Origin: Octopus sinensis
Lineage: Eukaryota
Assembly: GCF_006345805.1 (NCBI RefSeq)
Contig: NC_042999.1
Coordinates: forward strand, 11,222,001 to 11,286,000
DNA: 64,000 nucleotides
Direction: 5' to 3'
Position 1 is the first letter of the stretch. Each line of letters opens with the position of its first letter. A model generated the notes under the pieces. The model made no database searches and was not told where the DNA came from. It saw nothing but the letters and a program-made list of their open reading frames with translations. Shown here one piece after another: positions 3,802 to 49,603 of this stretch. Position numbers and translations under genes: made by a program.

Positions 3802-4553
3802 AGGAGTGAGAGAGAGAGAGAGAGAAAGAAAGATGGAGAGATGTGTGGATGCAAGGTCAGTAAGGAAACTCTTATTCCTTTCATTACCTTATTATTCTTT
3901 CATTGATACTATTTATAAATGGTGTTGGCAGGGAGGTGGAACGAAGATTATCAATTTCACTTTATCACCAAATTTGTTTACTACTTCTGTGTGTGTGTGT
4001 GTGTGTGTGCCTCCGCACATGCATGCTCAAATGTTCATGGGCATGGCACTCCTATATGGTGACAAACACAATAGATAAAAAAAGGTAAACATATGTTTAC
4101 ATTCCACCATGGAACCCAAACATTAAATTATGATGATGATGGTGGTGGAGGTGGTGATGCCCAATAATTGTATAAAAACTAGAGAAGAGACAGTATTTCT
4201 GTGAGCCAGAGTTTAGAGGGTATTTACAAATGTCTTCATGCCAATCACTGTGGGGCCTATGCTGTCGACAGGCTGAGCTTGCAGCACTGTCCCAGGGTTT
4301 GCTGTGAATTTTGCGTCTCTACTTTACATTGCACTAAATATTTTGTCTATAATTTCATCAGAAGTCAACACTGTGTTGATTAATTCCTCAACCTAAATCA
4401 AATGCATTATTTGTCCTCCAACCTTTTGTCTGTAGCATAATTACATTGGGGAACAGGATTGAAAGTTGTTGTCCACAGAGTAAAGCCGTTACGTTTAATT
4501 AAAGACGAGAAATTCAGAGATTACAGGTATTGATGTGGTGGTGTGGTAAGAAA

Positions 4554-17396: not shown

Positions 17397-20412
<3,016 letters not shown>

Positions 20413-32940: not shown

Positions 32941-33800
32941 GTGTACAGTGGGAGGGGGTAAGGATGCCACTGAAACCTCATTAAATTCATTTAATATGCT
33001 TTTAAATAGAAACATTTTGATCGAGTTAACAAGTTATAGAAAAATAAATTGCAGATTTTTGGGTTTTTTTTTTTTAAACAGAAGTTTTTGTTCTTTTTCC
33101 TGTGTTTCCGTTAATAGTTTGTCACAACAACTCTTTCTCTTTTCTTTTTTTTTTTTGTATTCTTTATATTTTTCTGCACAAGTTCTGATTTCACAATTTC
33201 ACTAAATGACAATCATTCTGAGATTGCGTTCTGCCCTAACTTGTGTTTGTGACATGACCATCGCCATTTTAATGACCACTTTTCCATGCTTGCATGGGTC
33301 GGGCAATATTTTCCATGGCTGAATGATGCCCTTCCTGTCACCAAACCCCTCTTGTTTGCATGCAAAACAATGTTTCTCTGTCGAACTAACCACCTCACAA
33401 AAACAACTATTAACATTATGATGATCTGTATACATGTGTGTGTGTGTGTGTGTGCCTATATATCTATCTATCTATCTATCTATACCGGCAATATATGGCT
33501 AATATAGGTTAAATGAGACATACCTATCTGCATGGCCGAAACAGCTGTCAGTTATAATGTATATGTATTTTTATATCTTGTTATATTTATTTAGTTATAT
33601 CTCATTATATTGATTGTAATTATTGTACTGTATTAATGTCTAATCTTAATGCTCTTGTGTAGTGTTTTAATAAAGTATATGATTCGGTATTATCTGATAG
33701 TTGATGAATGATTTAGATATATTTCTCCATTTTCTCATTTTGTATATATATATATATCTATATATTTTTTTTTTCCTTTTGTTCTTTTCTAGTAAACACA

Positions 33801-33921
33801 ATGAGTTTGGGGAATGATAAACAAATGGAAACCACCAAAGAGGAATGGATGGAGAAGTTGAACAATTTACACATCACCAGAGCTGATATGAACAGATTGA
33901 TTATGAATTATTTGGTCACAG
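33801..33921 (+). CDS. GID8: GID8/TWA1 coding exon 1 ([41 protein letters not shown]), start of LisH motif
   Basis: ATG at 33801, preceded by acceptor ttttctag (33785-33792), so a non-coding exon lies upstream. Donor cacag|gtgaaa. 121 nt, phase 1. Translation matches the recalled human GID8 N-terminus ([31 protein letters not shown]). Confidence 0.97.
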
Positions 33922-36900
33922 GTGAAATTATTTACCTTTAATTAATTTTGTTTTTCTTTCTTTCAACGTAGCAGGTGTAAAAACAAGGCTGTCGTTGCTT
34001 TTAAAGCTATATTCATACACACACACAGTCATGCTGTTATTTTTGACTTGTTTCAGTCATTGAATTGTAGCCATGCTGGAGCACTACCTGGAAGAATTCG
34101 CTCAAACAAATTGACCCCGGTACATTTTATTTAAAGTAGAAAACCATTTGTCAAGCAGTGGTGGGACACACACACACACACACGTCCAATGGGCTTCTTT
34201 TAGTTTCTATTTACCAAATTCACTGACAAGACTTTGGTTGCTCTGGGGTTACAGCCTGAGGTGCCACACAGTGGGACTGAACCTGAAACCATGTTGTTGG
34301 GAAGCTAATTTCTTACCCACCCACCCAGCCACACAACCTGTAATGATGTCTGGTGCACACTGGATGAGCCCCTACACCCCCCTCTATGTTCTACTGGGTT
34401 AAGTGGGAGAGGAAGAAAAGGGGCTCTCTGTGACTACCATAGGCATCTAAAATGATTAGCCAATGTCCTTTTAGCTCCCTTATTCTCATTTGCTAGTAAC
34501 AACTAAGCTGTGAAGAGATGTCAGGTGGGGGCTCAGGTAGGCTGGACAAATTCCACGACAGATCTAATGTATTGTTTGTACTAAACTTTAGTTTTGTTTG
34601 GAGCTGAGATACCTGAGGAACGACTGGAAGGGAGATTGGTGCCTCAGGTGGATGTTGGAGACATTCGTTACTCTGAGATTAATTATAGATTATTAACCTG
34701 ATCAAATTGTTTAAAAATTGATAATTTAATTTTCTTTCGTTCATATCTAAAATCTTTATTTAAGTGTAGTTAGAGGTAAATTCCTTCCATCACAAAACAT
34801 TCATAGAATACAAGAACACAGTTTCCCTCCCTCAGTTCAGACAGTCACATCCTCCTTCTCCTCCTCCTCCTCCTCATCATCATCATTTACTTTTCCGCCC
34901 CGACTGGCCTCCGTGCCGGTGGCACGTAAAAAGCACCATCCGTTCGTTGCCAGCCTCGCCTGGCCCCCGTGCCGGTGGCACATAAAAAGCACCATCCGAT
35001 CGTGGCCGTTGCCAGCCTCGCCTGGCCCCCGTGCCGGTGCAACATAAAAAGCACCATCCGTCTGTGGCCATTTGCCAGCTCCGTCTGGCACCTGTGCTGG
35101 TGGCACGTAAAGAGCACCCACTACACTCGCGGAGTGGTTGGTGTTAGGAAGGACATCCAGCCGTAGAAACACTGCCAGATCAGACTGGGCCTGATGCAGC
35201 CTTCTGGTTTCACAGACCCCAGTTGAACCGTCCAACCCATGCTAGCATGGAAAACGGACGCTAAATGATGATGATGATTGCTTCGGTCAAACAGTTCCTT
35301 CCTGTTTCCCAAGACCAGAGTATTTTTACATGGAACATTGGAAAGAACAACACTGCTTCTACGATGGTGTGATGCTTCTTTACAACCGTTATATAACGGT
35401 ACTGGTGCCACACACATACACACACACAATGGGCTTCTTTTAGTTTCTGCCTACTGAACCCACTCACAAGGTTTTGGTCCTTCCTGGCCAACAGTTGAGG
35501 ACACATTTGGCCAAAGTGCCATGCAGCAGCTATAATCTCCTGCGAACACTCAACATTGTTTTGTTGACCCAGTCGAGACAGACTTCACAACTCCCCACCC
35601 CCAAGAACTTACAATCCTATTATCACCCCACCAATGCTTCACAACATTGTAAGTCCTGAATTCTGGCCATTGCATCTGGAGTGGAGAGCTTACAATTTTT
35701 TCTCCAAGCTGGCCAATGTCTTTCTAGAACAAATTCGACTTTATATTGCTTGGTTGTTTGTGTGAGAAATGGTGGAAGTCCTATAAATTTGTTGGATGTG
35801 TTTGCCCCTAAGTATTTCGTGTCCTCATCGTGCGCTTGGTGCTTTTTATGTGGCACCATTTTAAAATGTTTGTCTTTCTGAATCATACGAGAGAACTGAA
35901 CAAAAATGCCCAAAAAACCTATTTATTTTCAAACACCTCTCCAACCATGACCTGTACGTTATACATTCTGAGAAAGGAAATGCTTTTCTGCCCTCATCAC
36001 TTAGGACCTCATTTAAAATCATTCCCACAGTTTAGATTGTCATCATTTAACCCTTTCCATATCATCTTGAGGCTGACCTTGCTTTGGTTCTACGACTCAA
36101 AGTTCCTGCTTGAAAGTGATCGTAATTTAAACTTTCCATTAAAATTTCATGTCAATTCTAATCACCAGCTTTAATTATGACAAACTTATTATACAAAATT
36201 CCTTATTATGAGGAAAGTGTGTTTCAGTAGAAATATTCTAGCAACAAGATTGAAGCTACAATTTGTAATTCTGTCTTCTTCAAAGCAAAGCTGAATGCTA
36301 AGCTGTGGGTTACACAAGAAGAGACCACAAAAGCCAACAGCTGTAGTGTTGCAGCTGTAGTGTTGCTTTGCTTGTCTTTGTTCTGGTCCTTCATAAACTA
36401 CAGGAAGAGACTGAGCCCTTGAGATAATCCTACATAAGCTACACTGTCACACTGTAATCCATCAGTTAAACCTAAGCAATGTTATTGTGTAATGTGGTCA
36501 TCAATAAGGGGGAGATGTCCCCTGTATCTGAAACGTTGCGTTTGTAGATGACCCCTACTGTTTAACACGAATACCTACGTGTCATCATATGCTGCTCCAG
36601 CGGAGTTGTCCCCGGTTACACCTTTTTCTTGCCAGAATATCAAGTGAGAAGCTTTACCCACCTCATTCATCATCATCATCATCATTGCTCTAATGTCTGC
36701 ATTTGTTTTTGATGTTTGTGTGAATTCCTTGAAGTAGATTTGCTACAGTCCGATGCCCTTCCTCTTATCAACCCTCACCTGTTCCCTTGAACACCACAAC
36801 TGCATTTTGTCAAGACAAGGGGACACTACACAAGCACATGGTGGGCTTCTTTCAGTTTCCATCTCCCAAATCCACACAAGGCTTTGATTGGTCCTCAGTG

Positions 36901-38523
36901 TGGCCAAAGACCCTTGCTCAAGGTGCCACACAGTGGGACTGAGCTCCAAGCCACATGGGTGTGAGGGGGGGGGAGTGACCATCTCAGTCAGGCAGCCATG
37001 TTGTGCCTCAATTCAAATAGGAAAGAACTGTTGTGAAAGTTTATTCTCAAATCTCTAAAATATCTGTAAATGTTTCAAAACAGATGTTTAGTTCCATCCA
37101 TTTCTCTCTCTCTCGTGTTTAGCTTCAGCTTTGGTTCAGCAGGAGTTTGTACATTAAAACATGAAACCATGGTGTTTGGGATAAATAATTACTAAACCTA
37201 AATAACAGCTCCTGGGGTGTGTGTGTGTGTGTGTGTTGGGGGATTAGGAATCTAGGGGAAGGATTACAGTTTTAGGTAATTCCCTAAACCGATGTCATCT
37301 AAAGACTTTTGCCAGAGCCTAACACTAGAGTGTGGTGGGTGGGGTTTCTGTGTCACTGTATTCTACTAAAGTTAGGGTTTCTGTCTGTGTGATGTGTGTG
37401 TGTGTGGGGGGGGATTGTACTTGTTATACTTGAAATTAAACTGCCATTACTGAATAGTTCCCCCCCACACTCCATTGAAAGGAGGGGGAGTCACCAGCTG
37501 CAACAGATTAGATGTTAAAAATTTTAAAAAAAACCCAAAAATCAAATTTTCTGTAATGTCCACATAAAAATATCTTTCCCTGAACTGTTTGGGTCTTGGG
37601 TCTTCTATGAATGTGACTAAAGTGTTTGCCATCAGTGACCGATGGCTGGTGTATATTTTTGCCAGCACGGGTAATATGGCATCACGCAATAATTAGGATT
37701 TAATTTCATCAACTTTCTTTGTGTTTAATGATGAAATGGAGACTAGTTTCCAAAAGAAACCTTTATGAAAATAAAACCCAATTCCTCATTTCTATAACTC
37801 CCTCCTCCCCCAGCCACTCTCATTTATACCCTTTCCTTATTTCAACATTTTAGTTTTAGGCCGTTGCCAGTGCTGCCTCGACTGGTCTCCATGCTGGTGG
37901 CATGTAAAAAGCACCAACCGATTGTAGGCCGTTGCCAGCCTCCCCTGGCACCTGTGCCGGTGGCACGTAAAAAGCATCCACTACACTCATGGAGTGGTTG
38001 GCGTTAGGAAGGGCATCCAGCTGTAGAAACTCTGCCAGATCAGACTGGAGCCTGGTGAAGCCTCTTGGCTTCCCAGACCCAAGTCAAACCGTCCAACCCA
38101 TACCAGCAGGGAAAGCAGACATTAAATGACGACGATGATGATGTAAATTAATCTGATTGCCCAATGATGGATATTTCTGATCATGAAAGTTCAATAAACC
38201 AATAATATTGGATTATATGGGTTTATTGGGGTGATCTTTGTTTTACTGCATGTTTAGCTGGGGATTTTCTATTCTGGTTTCAGTTTTACTTTAGGCTCAG
38301 ATTGTCCCAAGTTTGCATTAAAACATTGGAGCCTTTTGCATTTTGGCACCAGATTCATTCCTCCTGAAACATGCTGCCTTTGTGTCAATTAATTCTGAAG
38401 ATAATGAAGAATTTAGTTTAAAAAAATAAAAGGAAAGAAACTATTCACTTAATTAATCTGGTTTTTAGAACATGAATAAATGTGGAATTTTGATCAAAGA
38501 TTTTGATTTCGAACATTTTAAAA

Positions 38524-39184
38524 ACAGTATGCTCCAATGGATGTGTAATGTCTGTGTGCATACTCAACAGAGTATAAGTACCTTGAGAGAAAAGTTGGAC
38601 CTAAGAAGCATCAGCTGTGGTGTGCAAGAGAGACGACTGTGCTGGTATGGTCATGTGTTGCGTATGGATGAGGACAGCTGTGTAAAAGTGCCACACCCTA
38701 GCGGTTGAGGGAACCTGTGGAAGAGGTAGACCCCGGAAAACCTGGGACGAGGTGGTGAAGCACGACCTTTGAACATTAGGCCTCACTGAGGCAACGACTA
38801 GTGACAGACCTTTGGAAATATGCTGTGTTTGAGAAGACCCGGCAAGCTAAGTGAGACCATAATCTCGTGGCCTATGCCAGGGGTGTAACCAGCCCACTTA
38901 TACATACCTTTTCTTCATTGGATACTAAACTCTGCTTGCGAAGACCTGTTGAGGTAAGTGAAATCAAAATCAAATTCGATGACTGGCATCCGTGCTAGTG
39001 GAGCGGTAAGAGTACCATCCAAACGTGATCATTGCCAGAGCAGCTAACTGGCTTCCATGCCAGTGGCACGTAAAAACCATCTATTGAGCGTGATCGTTAC
39101 CAGCGTCGCCTCACTGGCACCTGTGCTGGTGGCACATGAAAAAGCATTCGAGCAAGGTCATTGCCAGTGCCGCTGGACTGGCTC
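38524..39184 (+). mobile_element. 5'-truncated RTE-clade LINE (ORF C-terminus + 3' UTR) in GID8 intron 1
   Basis: MLQWMCNV...LREKLDLRSISCGVQERRLCWYGHVLRMDEDSCVK and, after a frameshift, RGRPRKTWDEVVKHDL*, typical of RTE ORF ends. Cut off at 39185 by the inverted duplication. Confidence 0.8.
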
Positions 39185-40924
39185 CTCTGAATTAATCCAA
39201 GTCAGTGTTTACATAATCATTGGCGAAAGCATTAAATGTGTTAATTAGCAATTAGTATTAATAAACACCAGGAGTTTGAGTTGTTTTATCAAAATATATT
39301 TCAGTTGCTTTAATCGAACTGAAAATGTGATTCCGATGAAGGGACAATGTCCAGTTGTAAAGATACTCATGGAATTGGTTTATGTTGGAAAATAATGATC
39401 CTGAGAACAGTATAAGGACAGAAATTAGTGGAGGGCCTGGCTGGATTAAAATAACTCACCACAGAGTTTCAATATAGAATGAAATTTCGTGCTCTGGTAC
39501 TTGGACAATTTGCCTCAATAACGAGAAGAGATGGATGGAAGAAAAAGCACGACACAGCCACACAGTCGAGGGGGTGGGTTATCTGGTGACCCCACTAGTG
39601 TCAGTGTTACGTAAAAAGCACCCGTTACACTCAAGTGTTAGGAAGGGCTTCTAGCCAAAGAAATCCAGCCAAAGCAGAAATTGGAGCTCAATTGGGGTCT
39701 TCTGGCTCATCAGAACTTGTTGAACTGTCTTACAAAGATGGGGGTTCAATGAAGAGGGTCAGTCTGAATTAAAAGTATTACATATCTCTGTCCAACCCAT
39801 GCCAGCATGGAAAACGGACCTTAAACAATGATGATGATGATGATTTCAAACAATTGTGAATTCTTCTCAAAGCCTTCTTTGCTGCCATTTCTAAAGAAAC
39901 ATACTGCAATAATCTCTCCTCTAAAACAATAAGAATTCCTTCAGCCAAAACTAAGTTGTCTCCCTTCGCTCTACAATTAAGAACATTTTCCACTCCCAGA
40001 AAACCTTCATTTAACTTCCTAAATTCTTTCCAAATCATTTTTAACCCCCCCCCTCCCTATCCCTAAATAATATCTGCCAGCATGGAGGGCGGATGTTAAA
40101 CGATGATAATGGTGCTGCTGAAATGCAACTTTAAACAGTTTAGGAAACCTTCAACCATCTGACAAGTTTTTCCCGACCCACTTTTTCTCTAAAAAATAAA
40201 GTTTTAAACAGGCAAAGCAAGCCCCCCCCCCTCTAGTCAGAAAGCAGCTTACATTAGAAGGGAACAATGATTATAATTGAAAAATAACCAAAATTCATTT
40301 TTTCCTCAGAATCCAACCAGACAAAAAATGTTTTTCTTTAATTGCAAAAATAACTTGTTGAACTGTCTTACAAAGATGGGGGTTCAATGAAGAGGGTCAG
40401 TCTGAATTAAAAGTATTACATATCTCTGTCCAACCCATGCCAGCATGGAAAACGGACCTTAAACGATGATGATGATGATGATTTCAAACAATTGTGAATT
40501 CTTCTCAAAGCCTTCTTTGCTGCCATTTCTAGAGAAACATACTGCAATAATCTCTCCTCTAAAACCTTGCAAGTGGATTTGTAAATGGAAATTGAATGAA
40601 GCCCTATTTTGTGTGTCTACCACTGTCTAGACATCGTGTGATGCCTGTAAACAAATATCAACATAATAAAAGTGATTTGGTTTGCTTTCAGTTTTCCATG
40701 CAAACCCAGGCGAGGGTTGGCAACAGGAAGGGCACCTGGCCAGAGAAGAATCTCTCTTAACAATCCCTCTCTGAGCTAAAATGGAAGTGATGATGATGTT
40801 TGTTCTCTGAATTGATTGTTCCTTGTTCTGAAGGAAAGTTTTCATTGTTTACAGTTTTCAGAAATCTGTTTTGCATTTGCCTGGGTTTTTTTTTTTGACA
40901 TATTTTTATATTTGTTTTATTCAG

Positions 40925-41121
40925 AGGGTTTTAAAGAAGCTGCCGAAAAATTCCGAGTGGAATCCGGGATTCAGCCTTCAGTGGATTTGGATCAGCTGGA
41001 TGAGAGGATTAAGATTCGAGATGCTATACAGAATGGTCGTATCCAAGAAGCCATTTCACTTGTTAATAGTCTCCATCCAGAGTTGTTAGACAATGATCGT
41101 TATCTCTATTTTCACCTGCAG
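40925..41121 (+). CDS. GID8: GID8 coding exon 2 ([66 protein letters not shown]), LisH/CTLH
   Basis: Acceptor ttttattcag|, donor ctgcag|gtaaca. 197 nt, restores frame with exon 1 (121+197=318). Lies inside ORF 40816..41160. Confidence 0.97.
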
Positions 41122-43762
41122 GTAACACCTACAACATACGCTTTCGTTATCTCAATTTAAGGGGCTGGGGTTTATTGATTTTTATTGGTAATTCACCCAC
41201 CCACCCACCCCATTTAATTTCACATGTAACACATTTTGGATATCATTTCAGTTAAGTTTCTTTCTGTATTGCATTTTACCCCCTCCTGGGACCTGGCTGT
41301 CATAGGACCAAATTTTATAGCAATATTTTACACACCCTCTTCGGACCCGATCATCACAGGATCTTCTGTCACAGTGTGTTTGATAATAAACCTGCCTTTA
41401 CAGCCAGGTTTATAACCCCCACACACACACACACAAAATGTCAGTGCCAAGTGGATAATCTTTTTTAATCCCACATTTCTTGTAACTGAGACTTCCATTT
41501 CTTTGCTTCACTTCATAGATTGAGACGAAGTTTACATATTTACGGCTGGTTTTCTTGCACAATGTCCTTGTCGTGTCTGCTGCTGCTGCCTTCCCCTATC
41601 CTCCACCCCCACCCAACCACTAGGCTCACCTCCCTTCTCCTGCACACACCCACACCCTATTCTTACCATCATCCCTCCCCTCCACCACACACACATCTAC
41701 CATTGATCATTTCATCCTTTAGCATTTAAACCAGCCATATTCATCATCATCATCATTTAACGTCCGTTCTCCATGCTGGCATGGGTTGGACGGTTTGACC
41801 AGGGTCTAGGAAGCCAGGATGCTGCACCAGGCTCCAGTCTGATCTGGCAGTGTTTCTACAGCTGGATGCCCTTCCTAACGCCAACCACTCCATGAGTGTA
41901 GTGGGTGCTTTTTACGTGCCAGGAGAGGCTGGCAACGGCCACGATTGGTTGGTGCTTTTTACATGCCACCAGCACGGAAGCGAGCCCAGGTGGCGCTAGC
42001 ATCGGCCACGTACGGATGGTGCTTTTTTAGGTGCCAGGGTAGGCTGGCAATGGCCATGATTAGAACCAAATATTCTATTTTGTGTTCAAGCCAGCCAGAT
42101 CCCACCTCTCACACCTACCCTACAATGTCATTCTAAGAATAAAACAATTACAAGATAATGCAGGATCATTTCAAAACATTGCATTTGGTAGCGGAATCTG
42201 AACGCCAGAGTTCAATCCCTCTTTCATTCTCCTTGAAGCCAATCCTTCTTCACCCAAACATTCATCCCTCCATCGCTCACCTGTCTTCTAAATGATTCTG
42301 TTGCTGTAAATCATGAAAGCACAACCTCTTACTATAGACTCTATCGCCATCCCTGCACTGCATCCATCCATTCCCTGCCCCCCCCCCCGTCCCTTCCAAC
42401 CTTGCCCACCTTTCCTGATTCTTCTGCCTCCACACACTTTTTTCTGCTCCACTTCTTGAGTATGTCACCTTCATGGTATGATGCCCTACTCGCTCCTCTC
42501 TTTCTGGGCCACTCCAGCCACCCGTGTAAGTTGCTAAGTCTCTCCTCCATCGCCTGCTCCACCCCTCACACAAGCCAACCACACTCTTTACTTCCACAAA
42601 CGACAATCCAACCTCACTAGTGCTGCTGCTGCTGCAACAGGAAAATGCTTTCAGTGTTTGGCTGTGAGGGGGGCAATGACAGTGGAAATGTCTGATGGGC
42701 GTTCCAGTGTGGAACCCTTGTTTTATTCAGAATGGGAGGACTGTCCATAGACATGCAACCAGGTGAATACCCCCCTCTCAGTCACCATGTCTTCACTGTA
42801 TCGCTTCTCTGCTCATTGACACACTAAGCCTTCAACATGGAGCAACTGTCAGGATAGAAGCCCACAAAATTGTCCACCATCTTTTCAATAACATCCTCAT
42901 AAATTTTTTTTTTTTAAATCTGCAGCATCCATGATTTTCAGAAACATTTTCCACATAAATTGTCGAAGTATGGAATAAACTTTATCAGCCATTAGCTGTC
43001 AGGACACTGCATCCTTCAAAAATCCCATGCTTCCCAAAATTCACCAACATTATTCCTGACATGCCCATCCACCCTTTCATCTTTAGGACTCTTTTCATGT
43101 CCACTTTTATCTGTTTTTATGTTTTATTCTGTCTACAGTAAACGTACTTCTAGTTTTCATTTCCATTTCCTTTCTTAAATGTTGGCTTTCTGTCATCTCT
43201 TTAACCTTTTCTGATCAGTTGTAACACACCTGAGCACTAAAGATGCACTAAAGATTATTATAAGTTATTCACTGGTTGGGTTTGGGTTGGCAAGGTAGGA
43301 GTGTCAGTGTGGAGAACAATCAACAAGTAAATATAAAACATCCAGTCCACTCTGCTGAGTGGTTGGCATTTGGAAGGGCACCCAGCTGTAAAAACCTTGC
43401 TGAAACTGACCTCACCTGTGCTTGTGCCAAGTAAAAAGCACCAAGTCCACTCTGCTGAGTGGTTGGCATTTGGAAGGGCACCCGGCTGTAAAAATCCTGC
43501 CAAAACAGTCAGAAAAGTCTGCTGCAGGCTTCTGCGTGGGTGGTTCTTGTCAAACCCACCCACCCATGGCAGGTGGACATTAAACAATGATTACAACCAA
43601 AAGTATTGTTAGAAATGTCTTGACTGGATGTGTTCAGGAGGATTTGTGTCTGCTGAGGACAGAAGGATTTTCCATTCTAGAAAAATCTGAACCCAACCCA
43701 ACTTCTCCATGTTTTTTTCTTATGTTTTTTTTCTCTTCCTTTTCTTGTTTTGTTTGTTGTAG

Positions 43763-43960
43763 CAACAACACCTCATTGAACTGATCCGTGACAAAGACGT
43801 GGAAGCGGTCCTAGAATATGCCCAAAACCATCTGGCAGAACGTGGAGAAGAGAATCCAGAAATCTTATCAGAATTAGAAAGGACTTTAGCTCTTCTGGCA
43901 TTTGAAGACCCAGAGAATTCTCCATTCGGAGAGTTACTCCATCCGTCTCAAAGACAAAAG
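43763..43960 (+). CDS. GID8: GID8 coding exon 3 ([66 protein letters not shown]), CTLH/CRA
   Basis: Acceptor tttgttgtag|, donor caaaag|gttcgt. 198 nt, phase 0/0. Matches the recalled GID8 motifs QQHLIELIR and ERTLALLAF. Confidence 0.97.
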
Positions 43961-45523
43961 GTTCGTTATTGAAAATTAAAAATACTTTATTTTTGCAATT
44001 AAAGAAAAACATTTTTTGTCTGGTTGGATTCTGAGGAAAAAATGAATTTTGGTTATTTTTCAATTATAATCATTGTTCCCTTCTAATGTAAGCTGCTTTC
44101 TGACTAGAGGGGGGGGGGCTTGCTTTGCCTGTTTAAAACTTTATTTTTTAGAGAAAAAGTGGGTCGGGAAAAACTTGTCAGATGGTTGAAGGTTTCCTAA
44201 ACTGTTTAAAGTTGCATTTCAGCAGCACCATTATCATCGTTTAACATCCGCCCTCCATGCTGGCAGATATTATTTAGGGATAGGGAGGGGGGGGGGGGGT
44301 TAAAAATGATTTGGAAAGAATTTAGGAAGTTAAATGAAGGTTTTCTGGAGTGGAAAATGTTCTTAATTGTAGAGCGAAGGGAGACAACTTAGTTTTGGCT
44401 GAAGGAATTCTTATTGTTTTAGAGGAGAGATTATTGCAGTATGTTTCTTTAGAAATGGCAGCAAAGAAGGCTTTGAGAAGAATTCACAATTGTTTGAAAT
44501 CATCATCATCATCATTGTTTAAGGTCCGTTTTCCATGCTGGCATGGGTTGGACAGAGATATGTAATACTTTTAATTCAGACTGACCCTCTTCATTGAACC
44601 CCCATCTTTGTAAGACAGTTCAACAAGTTCTGATGAGCCAGAAGACCCCAATTGAGCTCCAATTTCTGCTTTGGCTGGATTTCTTTGGCTAGAAGCCCTT
44701 CCTAACACTTGAGTGTAACGGGTGCTTTTTACGTAACACTGACACTAGTGGGGTCACCAGATAACCCACCCCCTCGACTGTGTGGCTGTGTCGTGCTTTT
44801 TCTTTCCATCCATCTCTTCTCGTTATTGAGGCAAATTGTCCAAGTACCAGAGCACGAAATTTCATTCTATATTGAAACTCTGTGGTGAGTTATTTTAATC
44901 CAGCCAGGCCCTCCACTAATTTCTGTCCTTATACTGTTCTCAGGATCATTATTTTCCAACATAAACCAATTCCATGAGTATCTTTACAACTGGACATTGT
45001 CCCTTCATGGGAATCACATTTTCAGTTCGATTAAAGCAACTGAAATATATTTTGATAAAACAACTCAAACTCCTGGTGTTTATTAATACTAATTGCTAAT
45101 TAACACATTTAATGCTTTCGCCAATGATTATGTAAACACTGACTTGGATTAATTCAGAGAAAAATTGCACACAAAAAAAATTGGGAGCTGTTTTACTTTA
45201 CCTCCTCCTATAAATATTTCTTCCCCCATCACTTCTACTCACCCTATACCTTAAGGTTCCACTATTTTAACTCTTTCCAGCTTCCTTTCAGTCTCTCTTC
45301 TGTAAAAGGAGTTGCTGTGAGCCTCTTTCCTTTCTACTCTTGCCCACCTCAGTTGAAGGAGTTCTTAGTTTTGCAAGCTGTATGGTAACTTCACTCGTGC
45401 TGCCGGCATGAAACGGTACCCAGAACATGCTCTGGGGTAGTTTGGTGTTAAGGCATCCTGCTGCAGAAGTCAGACCAAAGCAAACGTTGACACACAAATC
45501 GACCCATCAAGCCGTGTCAAATA

Positions 45524-45965
45524 TACAAGGGTGAGTCAAAAAGTAATGCCATTTTGTTTAGGACAGGTAGAATTACTAACACAGGAACATGTATTGTACA
45601 TCAAAATGAAGCTGGTCCTCAGTGGATCACATCCCTACTTCTCAACATAGTCACTGTTTCTCTCAATAGCAATGTTCCACCTTCGAATGAGAGCATGTAT
45701 CCCTACCCTGTAAAATTCTGTTGACTGTTCTTTGAGCCACTTCTTCACTGCAAAGTCAAAGAGACAGCAGCACCTTCTTTTGAAGGCCCGTAACAGGTGA
45801 TGAAACATGGGTTCATCATTATGAACCGGAATCAAAGAGGCAGTCAATGGAGTGGCACCACCACCGTGTTCAAGATGCAAAAGTCAGCTGGAAATATCAT
45901 GGCAACTGTCTTTTGGGATGCTCAAGGTATCATTCTGGTCGATTTCTTGCCAAAAGGGAAAACAA
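45524..45965. mobile_element. Rearranged mariner fossil: 3' end + TIR on minus, fused to a first-Asp catalytic segment on plus
   Basis: TIR tacaagggtgagtcaaaaagtaatgcc at 45524. Minus-strand VKKWLKEQSTEFYRVGIHALIRRWNIAIERNSDYVEK*. Plus-strand VTGDETWVHHYEPESKRQSMEW from 45790, then SAGNIMATVFWDAQGIILVDFLPKG. Confidence 0.85.
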
Positions 45966-46900
45966 TAAACTCATAATAAGCTTCACTTTGATGTATGATA
46001 CATGTTGCTGTGTCTCAAACAAAATGGCATTTCTTTTTGACTCCCCTCCTATCGTCTTACCCGTACCAACATGGGAAATGGATGTTAAATAATGATGCAG
46101 TGATCTTTAATTATGTTGCCATTAATTTAAACTTATATATCACTAATAACTTAATGCCTGTATAACATGGGTCAGATAGGGGCCAAGGATGTGCATTGGG
46201 GTTCAGTGTCCGCTCTGGCTGGATGCCCTTCCTAATGTCAACTACTTTACAGAAAGTATTGGATATGCTTTTTCCCGGCACCGGTTCTTGTGAAGTTAGC
46301 AAATAATCAGAAAGACAAAACCTGTTGACAGGGTGCAGTGGGTGGCTTTGTGCCAAGTGTTGAGGGGCCAAAGTAGGAAAGAGGAGCAGGAACAGGTGTC
46401 TTGTTGTAGAGGAGACGTATGTGTACCCCAGCAGGGAAGGGAGAAAAGGGACAGAAAGAAAGATGGATGGGAAGAGGCACAATCAAGAGATGCAGTGAAG
46501 AGTGGACATGGCTGGAGGCTTGGACAGTTTAGGGGAATATAAAGGAAAATAGTTGTGGGTCAGGGATATGCCACGCCCCATTCTCTGAGAGGATCTTTGT
46601 CTTGCCAGTCCATTGTGTAATGTGTTTGGCATTAGGAAGGACGTCTAACCATAAAAACAAATGTGGGACCTTGGTGCAGTCCTTTGGCAGTTCCTATCAA
46701 ACTGTCCAACCCATGCCAGCATGGACAAACGTTAAATGATGATGACGATGACAATAAATTACATTGAAAAGACCCGTTTTTTGGGAAAGTTTAAATTCTT
46801 TCACACAAAACTCTGCTAAAGCAGACCATGTTGTTGTACAGATTGTAATAATTGTATGGGGTTGTTTACCTTTTGCTAAGACTCGTTTGTTTAATTGCAG

Positions 46901-47065
46901 GTTGCCAGTGAGCTTAACGCTGCCATTTTGGATGTTGATTCCACCCCTAAACTTGCAAATCTTCTCAAGTTATTGTTATGGGCCCAAGAGGAATTAGACA
47001 AGAAGAAAGTGAAATATCCGAAACTGGTTGATTTGGCCAAAGGAGAGATTGACTTCCCAAAATAA
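46901..47065 (+). CDS. GID8: GID8 last coding exon ([54 protein letters not shown]), CRA domain
   Basis: Acceptor ttaattgcag|, TAA at 47063-47065. Total CDS 681 nt = 226 aa. AATAAA at 47144 and 47387 are candidate poly(A) signals. Confidence 0.96.
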
Positions 47066-48069
47066 TTGATTTCTTGGGGGTTTCTTTTTTTTTGTTTGGT
47101 CTATCCAGGAAAAAAAAGAAAGAAAGAAAGAAACGACTATCTGAATAAACTGATATTTAGAAGAACTAATTTTGGGGGCATCGAGTGAGACCCAATCAGT
47201 TGGAAGTTGGCGGGCTTTACCATTTGTTTCCAAACCAGATTTGGTAAATATTTATGGTTTATTGTATATTGACATTTCTTTAAATATTTGTTGCTATGAC
47301 AACAGCAAATTTCAGTTGTTTTCTAATAAGGACTTCTGGAAACTTTAACTGCACACTTCATGTGACTCTCTTTTCACCCATCAAACAATAAAAAAAGTTT
47401 TTTTTTTGTTATTTAACTTATTTTAAACCAAAATCTTCGTTTGTTTATTGCTTCTAAACTACTCTCTCCAAATTTGGTTTTATTCTCAGACACAAGACCT
47501 GTTAACCTTTTGCTTAGAATATTGGTGAATTCCTTCCATGTTAGCGTCTTTTCGACAGCCCAACGTTTCTCTTTTCCTTCCCCGTCACCAAAACATTCTT
47601 CTTCTTCCACAGTGCCAGAACCGATTTCTTTCTATCCAGAACCAAAGCAGTCATTTCCCCTTGAACACATCTTCGTCTGCTTTTCATATTCCAACCATTT
47701 TTGTTTTGCCAACTCATTCCTCACTAAATGTTTGTCTACCTTTCATCTGGTCCATTTTTGCCTTTGACCAATTTAACAAATCACCAGTGACAAACTGACC
47801 CCTAATATTCCATCTCCCCACAAACCCTGCCATCATTGATACAATTCAATTCTAAACTTCTAGCTTTTTATTTTTAACAGAAAAGCAAAAAATATTCCAG
47901 TAAACTCACAAACAAAACACAAGGTAAAAGCTTTCTGCTCTAGGCACAAAGGCTGAAATTTGGGGGAGGCATTAACCCTGTTCAACTGCTCCTTTATTTT
48001 ATTGAATCCCCCCAAAGGATGAAAAGCAACATGCTCCTTTGATGGCATTTGAACTCAGAAATCCAGAAG

Positions 48070-49507: not shown

Positions 49508-49603
49508 TTAGCCCTGCAAAACTGCATTAAAACATTGGTTCTCAGAACCTTCGGACAAACACATCACATGATTCAATGGATGTTTGGAATCTTTCAGATA
49601 ATT
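49508..49603 (-). CDS. Gelsolin-like terminal exon (NYLKDSKHPLNHVMCLSEGSENQCFNAVLQG*)
   Basis: Acceptor tatattttccag|, TAA at 49508-49510. The stop right after G3 indicates a three-domain (severin/fragmin-size) protein. The 8 exons sum to 825 nt in one frame. Confidence 0.93.
   Translation of the reverse strand, partial: NYLKDSKHPLNHVMCLSEGSENQCFNAVLQG

Follow-up and report, generated by a model that had tools for sequence, protein, structure and literature searches.

An Inverted Duplication Bracketing GID8 Exons 2 and 3 in Octopus sinensis, with an Older Core and a Probable Recent Recopying

The introns that flank coding exons 2 and 3 of GID8 in Octopus sinensis carry a near-perfect inverted duplication of 1.17 kb. 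The arrangement as a whole is probably best explained as a real, locus-specific inverted duplication with an old core, composed of segments A and B, that was recopied recently in O. sinensis and whose effects on RNA are by-products. On comparison with the orthologous sequence of Octopus vulgaris, the core inverted repeat of ~740 nt is older than the split between the two species, and the 1.17-kb near-perfect form appears to be specific to O. sinensis, representing a recent recopying and extension of the older repeat.

GID8 Gene Model and Architecture of the Inverted Repeat

The coding exons of GID8 in the window, the whole 64-kb stretch of O. sinensis DNA that was analyzed and that matches assembly GCA_006345805.1 at 100% identity, are the following:

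33801–33921, + strand: coding exon 1, the first coding exon, with the ATG at 33801
40925–41121, + strand: coding exon 2, 197 nt in length
43763–43960, + strand: coding exon 3, 198 nt in length
46901–47065, + strand: coding exon 4, the last coding exon, stop codon included

All of the coding exons have AG/GT splice sites, and the joined coding sequence is translated into a 226-residue LisH+CTLH protein that is identical to O. sinensis XP_029634221.1. The coordinates and gene model of the original prediction are upheld, but its "exon 1" is the first coding exon rather than the first exon of the gene: the annotated start of GID8 is near position 3849 of the window, ~30 kb upstream of the first coding exon, and 5′ exons therefore precede it. 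Both arms of the inverted repeat are inside the annotated gene, on the same strand. The arms and their segments are arranged as follows:

39185–40353, + strand: left arm, in the intron that separates coding exon 1 from coding exon 2, reverse-complementary to the right arm
39185–39713, 39714–39927, and 39928–40353, + strand: segments A, B, and C of the left arm, respectively
40352–40565, + strand: B′, a 214-nt direct repeat of B (39714–39927)
43987–45159, − strand: right arm, the opening 1.17 kb of the intron downstream of coding exon 3, reading C-B-A on the + strand

Repeat finding, blastn, and global alignment agree on the near-perfect inverted duplication around exons 2 and 3 that had been predicted. 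By repeat finding and blastn, the left arm (1169 nt) matches the reverse complement of the right arm (1173 nt) at 99.4% identity, with one mismatch and three gap openings. This figure is uncertain, since homopolymer indels, which are typical of consensus error, account for three of the four differences; that most of the differences are of this kind had been noticed at the outset. In the global alignment, the sole substitution is G/C at 39335/45009, and the indels are 1-nt differences in an A-run at 39539 and in a C-run at 39995, together with a run at 40045 that reads C9 in one arm and C13 in the other. The right arm begins 26 nt past the exon 3 donor, as proposed, and 571 nt separate the end of the left arm from the exon 2 acceptor (~570 nt in the original prediction), a distance that is reduced to 359 nt when the additional 214 nt of B′ are included. 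B′ differs from B by two mismatches and is also the reverse complement of 44416–44629. The C/B′ junction, which in O. sinensis is known from one PacBio-based assembly, is located at 40353/40354 and reads GCAAAAATAA/CTTGTTGAAC, with "AA" as the only bases common with the source context.

A chance origin of the inverted pair is excluded; the runner-up among the inverted pairs of the 64-kb window is 359 nt long at 87% identity. The GID8 pair is the longest and most identical in the 64 + 116 kb that were scanned, and the remaining inverted pairs in this sequence are 250–410 nt long at 77–97% identity. Between the arms is a spacer of 3.6 kb of conserved, collinear sequence that holds the two exons. 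A weaker, competing inverted pair brackets exon 2 alone:

37888–38141, + strand: SINE copy, inverted with respect to 41741–41978, 254 nt at 86% identity

Repeat Content of the Arms

The only multicopy part of the arms is a SINE, with a core of ~60 nt and a degenerate body of ~250 nt:

44503–44756, − strand: old SINE fragment in the right arm, with a mirror copy at ~39587–39840 in the left arm

The SINE core (44500–44560) has ~55 other copies in ~210 kb of octopod sequence, a sample that amounts to ~0.01% of the 2.7-Gb genome, and essentially none are seen for the rest of the arm. The description of the repeat as a locus-specific duplication containing unique sequence, rather than two dispersed repeats, is thus borne out in that the arms are single copy in these ~210 kb outside the SINE core.

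These data bear on a different origin, in which a transposable element would have inserted twice independently, once in each orientation, to give the two arms, like inverted Alu pairs. The arms do hold a SINE fragment, the genome is full of SINE pairs, and the left arm adjoins another SINE-like repeat (39007–39184). However, such an origin is hardly credible: ~900 of the 1170 nt have no other copy in the ~210 kb of octopod sequence, as compared with ~55 for the SINE core, and the many-copy family expected of an inverted transposable element pair is not observed in this sample of the 2.7-Gb genome. Moreover, unique sequence common to both arms is found on either side of the SINE, the right arm is continuous into the 26 nt beside exon 3, and the other inverted pairs do not approach the length of this one. 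When the joined flanks of the left arm are compared with further copies of the SINE-like repeat ending at 39184, the alignments cross the junction by only 2–11 nt, too short a stretch to argue for an insertion of the left arm into this repeat. A LINE and an origin by 3′-transduction were also considered and dropped, since neither the longest arm ORF nor the LINE-like ORF at 38472–38708 has a match in Pfam, and the flanks outside the arms also differ. No known RNA genes are found between 33 and 48 kb of the window by Rfam (33000–48000), tRNA, and tandem-repeat scans. A hairpin-RNA (endo-siRNA) locus, for which small RNAs of ~21 nt would be expected from both arms, was also considered, and here too the region matches no Rfam family.

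Comparison with O. vulgaris

The presence of the repeat in another species had been put forward as a check of its reality, and an inverted pair is indeed found in the O. vulgaris assembly GCA_951406725.2. Its arms, at L002 98618–99354 and 103149–103876, are ~737 nt long and 96.0% identical, and they bracket exon 2 (99723–99919) and exon 3 (102486–102683) of O. vulgaris GID8. The O. sinensis right arm is collinear with L002 102710–103879. A five-way alignment shows that the outer boundary of the arms and the boundary between B and unique sequence are identical in the two species. The left arm of O. vulgaris lacks segment C and that of O. sinensis is thereby 426 nt longer, and the distance to the exon 3 donor is 26 nt in O. 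sinensis as compared with 465 nt in O. vulgaris. As would be expected of an inverted segmental duplication that evolves in concert, paralogous arms thus occupy orthologous positions in sister species.

The O. vulgaris assembly was built from ONT, 10x, and Omni-C data from another individual, and that of O. sinensis was built from PacBio and Hi-C data (PMC10700109). Since this independent ONT assembly contains a diverged pair at the same outer boundary, the core repeat is not an artefact and predates the split, which is dated to ~2.5 Mya (PMC10700109). The original prediction had named a fold-back artefact as a real alternative. Similar to products of missed SMRTbell adapters or fold-back, the O. 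sinensis repeat is a near-perfect inverted duplicate with mostly homopolymer differences in a PacBio-based assembly. In contrast to such products, its arms are 3.6 kb apart with two exons in between, and a diverged copy, with 12 substitutions and 4 indels between the arms, exists in the ONT assembly of another species. For the core repeat, this alternative was therefore rejected; the part that is specific to O. sinensis rests on one assembly.

Further species contribute little to polarity. The GID8 protein cluster includes, by name, O. sinensis, O. vulgaris, and Argonauta hians, and no member bearing the name of O. bimaculoides or of a further Octopus species was found in it. Nothing in the GID8 gene of Argonauta corresponds to the arms, and its compact introns, which share only the SINE core with them, are mute on polarity.

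Probable Recent Recopying and Extension in O. sinensis

Within segments A and B, the O. sinensis arms differ by 1 mismatch, and the O. vulgaris arms differ by 12 mismatches and 4 indels. Between species, the two right arms differ by 11 mismatches, and the O. sinensis left arm differs by 16 mismatches from the left arm of O. vulgaris, to which it is orthologous by position, as compared with 10 from the O. vulgaris right arm. The arms are thus more alike within the species than between species in O. sinensis (1 versus 11–16 mismatches) but not in O. vulgaris (12 versus 11–16). Because its A-B sequence is nearer to the O. vulgaris right arm (10) than to the left (16), the present O. sinensis left arm appears to derive from the right arm.

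These observations are consistent with the following scenario. An inverted copy of ~740 nt (A-B) of the intron that follows exon 3 was already present before exon 2 in the common ancestor. In O. sinensis, the right arm would then have acted as donor, with 1169 nt (A-B-C) copied into the left arm in the course of one recent repair: a strand from the left arm would likely have invaded the right arm, synthesis would have continued beyond the homologous region, and end joining would have followed. Such a repair would amount to gene conversion with overshoot or to a template switch. B′ would be the surviving inner end of the ancestral left arm, joined through 2 nt of microhomology. B′ and the O. 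vulgaris left arm share the same boundary with the unique intron sequence, CTAAAAC/CTTGCAAG, and at alignment column 743, B′ keeps the ancestral G where both O. sinensis arms have A. We infer that the event would be roughly 10^5 years old or less, because the arms differ by 1 substitution in 1.17 kb, as compared with ~1.7% between the species.

Additional sites point to exchange between the arms. Two bases specific to O. sinensis are common to B′ and the right arm of this species (columns 593 and 604). At column 179, the site of the sole substitution between the O. sinensis arms (G/C), the O. vulgaris arms differ as well, with the two bases swapped. This match in both site and bases argues for two distinct genomic copies, and the coincidence would be unlikely as a consensus error (about 12/727 × 1/3). 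Together, columns 593, 604, and 179 may be read as signs of repeated arm-to-arm exchange, with only two to three sites suggesting earlier conversion.

The polarity of the difference between O. sinensis and O. vulgaris is judged from two species with no outgroup, and the long form A-B-C-B′ could instead be ancestral, with O. vulgaris having deleted the 638 nt between B and B′ and O. sinensis having kept homogenizing its arms. Deletion between direct repeats of 99% identity is common and simple and would yield exactly the O. vulgaris sequence, and the exchange between arms that this history calls for is evidenced independently. It is nevertheless a rather doubtful reading, since it costs more events (a complex original duplication, a deletion, and a full-length conversion of recent date from which B′ was spared), whereas recopying from the right arm accounts by one event for the extension as well as for the near-identity of the arms.

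An artefact confined to O. sinensis was also considered, in which the core of ~740 nt is real but the extension C (426 nt), B′ (214 nt), and the near-identity of the arms stem from PacBio assembly or consensus. Only one assembly shows the extended form, the differences between the arms are mainly of the homopolymer type, and the O. sinensis assembly is more fragmented than that of O. vulgaris, with 13,516 scaffolds (PMC10700109). In addition, ORF and protein look-ups found no independent contig: exact look-ups of the 226-residue protein and the exon 3 ORF gave no match, and neither did exact look-ups of ORFs across the C/B′ and right-arm inner junctions, in which TTG is read literally and gene calls starting with M are missed, nor a homology search with a 96-residue antisense ORF spanning exon 3 and segment C. 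On the other hand, overlap and consensus errors require homology, and the C/B′ join has 2 nt; chimeras from missed adapters are abutting palindromes, whereas the insertion seen here rejoins its own locus in register; and the sole arm substitution is the one that matches the O. vulgaris arm difference. We consider this artefact unlikely and favor the recent recopying of an older repeat.

Predicted RNA Duplex and Its Possible Consequences

With both arms in one pre-mRNA, a duplex of 0.7 kb in O. vulgaris and 1.17 kb in O. sinensis would loop out exons 2 and 3. The predicted duplex comprises 1166 intermolecular base pairs (−2180 kcal/mol) in O. sinensis and 713 base pairs (−1313 kcal/mol) in O. 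vulgaris; in O. sinensis, these pairs form a continuous helix, in line with the duplex of >1 kb that had been postulated. As visualized in the gene model, a canonical acceptor is located upstream of exon 2 and a canonical donor downstream of exon 3, and the introns directly flanking the two exons carry reverse-complementary sequence in both O. sinensis and O. vulgaris, as in circRNA loci with complementary flanking introns. Exons 2 and 3 sum to the predicted 395 nt (197 + 198), and both proposed junctions are found in the sequence, CAAAGACAAAAG/AGGGTTTTAAAG for the circle and GGTCACAG/GTTGCCAG for the skipped product. The joining of exon 1 to exon 4 is frameshifted, as anticipated, with a stop after three codons in the joined sequence, and the 395-nt circle has no AUG ORF longer than 29 residues.

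The predicted fold is a long, near-perfect intramolecular duplex in one transcript, as is expected of a substrate for ADAR hyperediting, and hyperediting of the intronic arms would be the most likely consequence. A-to-I editing in octopus is mostly found in introns or 3′UTRs (PMC9699675). The noncoding exon 2–3 circle or the skipped, frameshifted RNA would account for at most a minor fraction of transcripts. Moreover, removal of the upstream intron co-transcriptionally, before the right arm is made ~3.6–6 kb later, could prevent the duplex. We regard the inverted repeat as a structural variant that is tolerated and whose effects on RNA would be by-products, and not as a dedicated regulatory switch.

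A functional RNA switch would take the same duplex as the driver of back-splicing of exons 2 and 3, of an NMD-targeted frameshifted skip, or of both, with ADAR modulating the outcome and tuning GID8 as the CTLH scaffold. The geometry is suggestive: the O. sinensis arms bracket exactly two canonical exons, 26 nt from the donor and 359–571 nt from the acceptor; the bracketing is common to O. vulgaris; the predicted duplex is very stable; and skipping exons 2 and 3 shifts the frame. Complementary flanking introns are known to promote circularization, which ADAR antagonizes (Ivanov 2015 and Rybak-Wolf 2015, cited in PMC9699675). However, the substitution divergence of the right arm between the species, 1.2–3.6% per 250 nt, is no lower than that of the flanking intron, and the marked differences in arm length and in distance to the donor (26 versus 465 nt) over 2.5 My resemble drift and repair. 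In addition, the arms have no counterpart in Argonauta GID8, RefSeq contains no skipped isoform (X1 and X2 differ at the 5′ end only), and circRNAs are scarce and low in octopus: the only octopus circRNA survey that our search found, of total RNA-seq from several O. vulgaris tissues, yielded just 296 high-confidence circRNAs at low levels (PMC9699675). Our literature search found no report of a regulated GID8 circRNA. A switch is thus quite improbable, and this part of the original prediction finds no support. Highly improbable as well is the further proposal that the repeat was kept and repeatedly rehomogenized because it is functional, making GID8 output ADAR-dependent in Octopus: the unedited duplex would channel pre-mRNA into the circle or the frameshifted skip, and hyperediting would melt the duplex and bring back linear mRNA. 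If this were true, the level of the CTLH E3-ligase scaffold would follow how strongly the cell edits its RNA, and the O. sinensis extension, which brings the repeat within 26 nt of the donor, would amount to a strengthening of the switch in this species.

Comparison with Known Systems

Exon circularization by reverse-complementary flanking introns, both inverted Alu elements and nonrepetitive sequences, has reportedly been described at a number of loci. Similar to these loci, the complementary sequences of GID8 flank internal exons with canonical sites, and a circle and a skipped linear RNA would be the expected products. The GID8 arms are 0.7–1.17 kb long and 96–99.4% identical, as compared with the 30–300 nt usual in such loci, and, unlike inverted Alu pairs, they are a locus-specific duplication whose circle is predicted only. 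The mouse Sry gene, located between long inverted repeats, is said to give a circular transcript. As in Sry, the sequence that is circularized, or in GID8 predicted to be circularized, is enclosed by long inverted repeats in the genome that are specific to the locus and nearly identical. The main differences are that the Sry arms are tens of kilobases long and surround a single-exon gene, whereas those of GID8 are intronic and surround two internal exons of a housekeeping-type gene, the circle again being a prediction.

The GID8 inverted repeat does not reveal a new mechanism. Similar to ADAR hyperediting substrates, the predicted intronic duplex exceeds 700 bp, here in an animal with very high ADAR activity. 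If this duplex forms in vivo, the locus would be a natural cephalopod test case of a very long, nonrepetitive intronic dsRNA in a setting of extreme ADAR activity and scarce circRNAs. The two species would serve as a comparison pair, with arms of 0.74 kb at 96% identity located 465 nt from the donor in O. vulgaris and of 1.17 kb at ~99.5% located 26 nt from it in O. sinensis.

At the level of DNA, the locus would neatly illustrate how inverted repeats in introns can be repaired from one another, by gene conversion or template switching, in the germ line of a mollusc. Arm-to-arm gene conversion is reported to occur in the palindromes of the human Y chromosome. Similar to these palindromes, the O. 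sinensis arms show 1 difference within the species as compared with 11–16 between species, and alleles are common to both arms. The Y palindromes are 9 kb to 1.45 Mb in size, whereas the GID8 arms are ~1 kb, and O. vulgaris lacks recent homogenization. Unlike conversion in the Y palindromes, the O. sinensis event would have overshot the homology and ended by microhomology joining.

GID8 and the Inverted Repeat in Its Introns

The GID8 coding exons, all of which have AG/GT borders, join into a CDS for a 226-aa product with LisH and CTLH domains that matches O. sinensis GID8 isoform X2 (XP_029634221.1) exactly. What the original prediction called exon 1 is a coding exon but not the gene start; it is the first coding exon, since the annotated gene starts ∼30 kb further upstream. 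Coding exons 2 and 3, whose combined length of 395 nt was given correctly, are bracketed by the inverted duplication that had been described: one arm is the reverse complement of the other at 99.4% identity (repeat finder and blastn). No other inverted pair in the window is comparable, the runner-up being 359 nt long and 87% identical.

GID8 coding exons and repeat segments in the window
33801−33921, first coding exon
39185−40353, left arm (1169 nt)
39185−39713, segment A
39714−39927, segment B
39928−40353, segment C
40352−40565, segment B′
40925−41121, coding exon 2 (197 nt)
43763−43960, coding exon 3 (198 nt)
43987−45159, right arm (1173 nt), A-B-C on the minus strand
46901−47065, coding exon 4

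Segment B′, immediately past the left arm, is a direct-orientation copy of B with two mismatches (repeat finder, blastn, and alignment), giving the order A-B-C-B′ on the left side. In a global alignment, the arms differ at four places: a G/C substitution (39335/45009), two 1-nt indels within short runs (39539 and 39995), and the length of a C run (C9 versus C13, 40045). The right arm starts 26 nt from the exon 3 donor and the left arm ends 571 nt from the exon 2 acceptor, both as first reported, and the end of B′ is 359 nt from that acceptor. A join of exon 1 to exon 4 is indeed out of frame, with a stop after three codons, and the longest AUG ORF in a 395-nt exon 2−3 circle is ≤29 aa.

Comparison with O. 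vulgaris

The window and the O. sinensis isoform X1 locus (GCA_006345805.1, CM016861.1) match at 100% identity. The O. vulgaris counterpart (GCA_951406725.2) is collinear with the window, with intron substitution divergence of ∼1.7%, and the two species are thought to have split ∼2.5 Mya (PMC10700109). A search of this second species recovers a diverged inverted pair, 98618−99354 and 103149−103876 of the fetched locus, 96.0% identical and bracketing its own exons 2 (99723−99919) and 3 (102486−102683). In a five-way alignment of both species' arms and B′, the outer boundary (…|CT[C/G]TGAATTAAT…) is common to both species, and CTAAA[A/G]C|CTTGCAAG, where the O. vulgaris left arm stops on its inner side, also bounds B′ in O. 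sinensis. These shared boundaries indicate that the core A-B duplication is real and older than the split. The fold-back artifact raised as an alternative fails for this core: the pair and its outer boundary recur in an independent assembly, built from ONT, 10x, and Omni-C data on a Mediterranean individual, as opposed to PacBio and Hi-C for O. sinensis (PMC10700109). The two-species comparison is new here and removes the artifact explanation, now highly improbable, for the core repeat.

Probable Recent Extension in O. sinensis

Window 39928−40351 is absent from O. vulgaris, where the left arm consists of A-B followed by unique intron.

Distances between arms over segments A-B
O. sinensis left versus O. 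sinensis right: 1 mismatch, 1 gap
O. vulgaris left versus O. vulgaris right: 12 mismatches, 4 gaps
O. sinensis right versus O. vulgaris right: 11 mismatches, 2 gaps
O. sinensis left versus O. vulgaris left: 16 mismatches, 3 gaps
O. sinensis left versus O. vulgaris right: 10 mismatches, 3 gaps

By these mismatch counts, what now forms the O. sinensis left arm is right-arm sequence. At alignment column 743, B′ keeps the ancestral G and both O. sinensis arms have A; B′ appears to be the leftover of the older left arm. Under the alternative polarity, less likely but plausible, the long form would be ancestral and a 638-nt deletion between B and B′ would have occurred in O. vulgaris. The simplest history is instead a single recent repair event, in which a break in the left arm would have led to invasion of the inverted right arm, synthesis through B and then 426 nt beyond the end of homology, and microhomology-mediated rejoining where the old B begins; at the join of C and B′, 'AA' alone is common to both contexts. 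The 1.17-kb form would thus be an O. sinensis-specific product of conversion plus extension, with an age of roughly 10^5 years or less, because there is one substitution per 1.17 kb compared with ∼1.7% between species.

Two sinensis-specific bases (columns 593 and 604) are common to B′ and the O. sinensis right arm, and at column 179, the sole O. sinensis arm substitution, the O. vulgaris arms carry the same pair of bases the other way round. Together, these columns point to repeated exchange between arms and to two genuinely distinct copies. The extension has a single, fairly fragmented assembly as its sole basis, and homopolymer indels make up most arm differences, as an assembly artifact could produce. 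Overlap or consensus errors, however, require homology, of which the C-B′ join offers only 2 nt; chimeras from missed adapters yield palindromes whose arms abut rather than a copy returning in register to the same locus; and the column 179 coincidence argues for two real copies. An artifactual extension is therefore unlikely, though less remote than for the core. ORFs across the junctions had no match in exact look-ups and one homology search.

Predicted Consequences for the Pre-mRNA

Both arms lie within one pre-mRNA, and co-folding predicts a continuous duplex of 1166 bp (−2180 kcal/mol) in O. sinensis and 713 bp (−1313 kcal/mol) in O. vulgaris, dwarfing a competing SINE pair around exon 2 (254 nt, 86%). 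Long intronic duplexes of this type serve as ADAR substrates and can favor back-splicing or exon skipping, and ADAR in turn antagonizes circularization. The intronic arms are thus likely to be hyperedited, with a small amount of exon 2−3 circle or skipped RNA possibly arising as a by-product. A by-product is preferred to the proposed circRNA/ADAR switch because octopus circRNAs are few and low, the right arm shows no more interspecies conservation than the intron around it, and the distance from duplex to exon 3 donor differs (26 nt in O. sinensis versus 465 nt in O. vulgaris). In the single octopus survey found, editing is for the most part intronic or in 3′UTRs, circRNA levels are low overall, and only 296 high-confidence circRNAs were obtained by total RNA-seq across the O. 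vulgaris tissues surveyed (PMC9699675). The original interpretation is borne out in part: the structure is real and locus-specific and its description was accurate, but the proposed regulatory function, a tuned switch, is unsupported. The locus joins two known kinds of arrangement: exons bracketed by complementary introns, and inverted segmental duplications whose arms convert each other.

Repeats in and around the Arms

Comparison of the right arm with the window and the O. vulgaris and Argonauta hians loci (∼210 kb in total) identifies only a SINE core (∼44500−44560, ∼55 matches) as multicopy; the remainder has no further copies there, which upholds a locus-specific duplication and rejects a transposon pair. 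The degenerate SINE body in the arm reaches ∼250 nt (families D2−D5, repeat finder), and scans of 33−48 kb of the window for Rfam families, tRNAs, and tandem repeats gave no match. A SINE-like repeat with ∼70-nt modules (…GTTGCCAG…GGCACGTAAAAAGCA…) adjoins the left arm at 39007−39184, and its other copies run on beyond the point where the arm starts. In the A. hians GID8 gene, which spans 10 kb, the locus comparison finds no counterpart of the arms. That gene carries an inverted pair of its own (351 nt, 95.7%; 13556−13906 and 16459−16809 of the fetched locus) bracketing exon 2 alone, probably a SINE pair because it overlaps matches to the arms' SINE core.

The O. vulgaris GID8 model (10001−105799 of its locus; 327 aa, 96 kb) has a 101-aa N-terminal extension relative to O. 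sinensis GID8 (226/231 aa, 43 kb) and may be an overextended annotation. A 1.5-kb direct tandem duplication at 17432−20403 (17432−18931 versus 18869−20403, 96%) lies upstream, in a GID8 intron or the 5′ region. In the exon 2−3 intron, a SINE copy carries a 100-nt tandem duplication at 43329−43506 (43329−43406 versus 43429−43506, 87%), where a 100-column alignment gap suggests one copy fewer in O. vulgaris. A mariner-type transposase remnant (45797−45976; Pfam PF01359, E = 2.6e-11) lies in the intron after exon 3, ∼640 nt past the right arm's outer end. Downstream of GID8, a tandem array of 32-nt units, ∼95% identical between copies (55639−56306), lies inside the span of a neighboring minus-strand gelsolin-domain gene starting near 49508.
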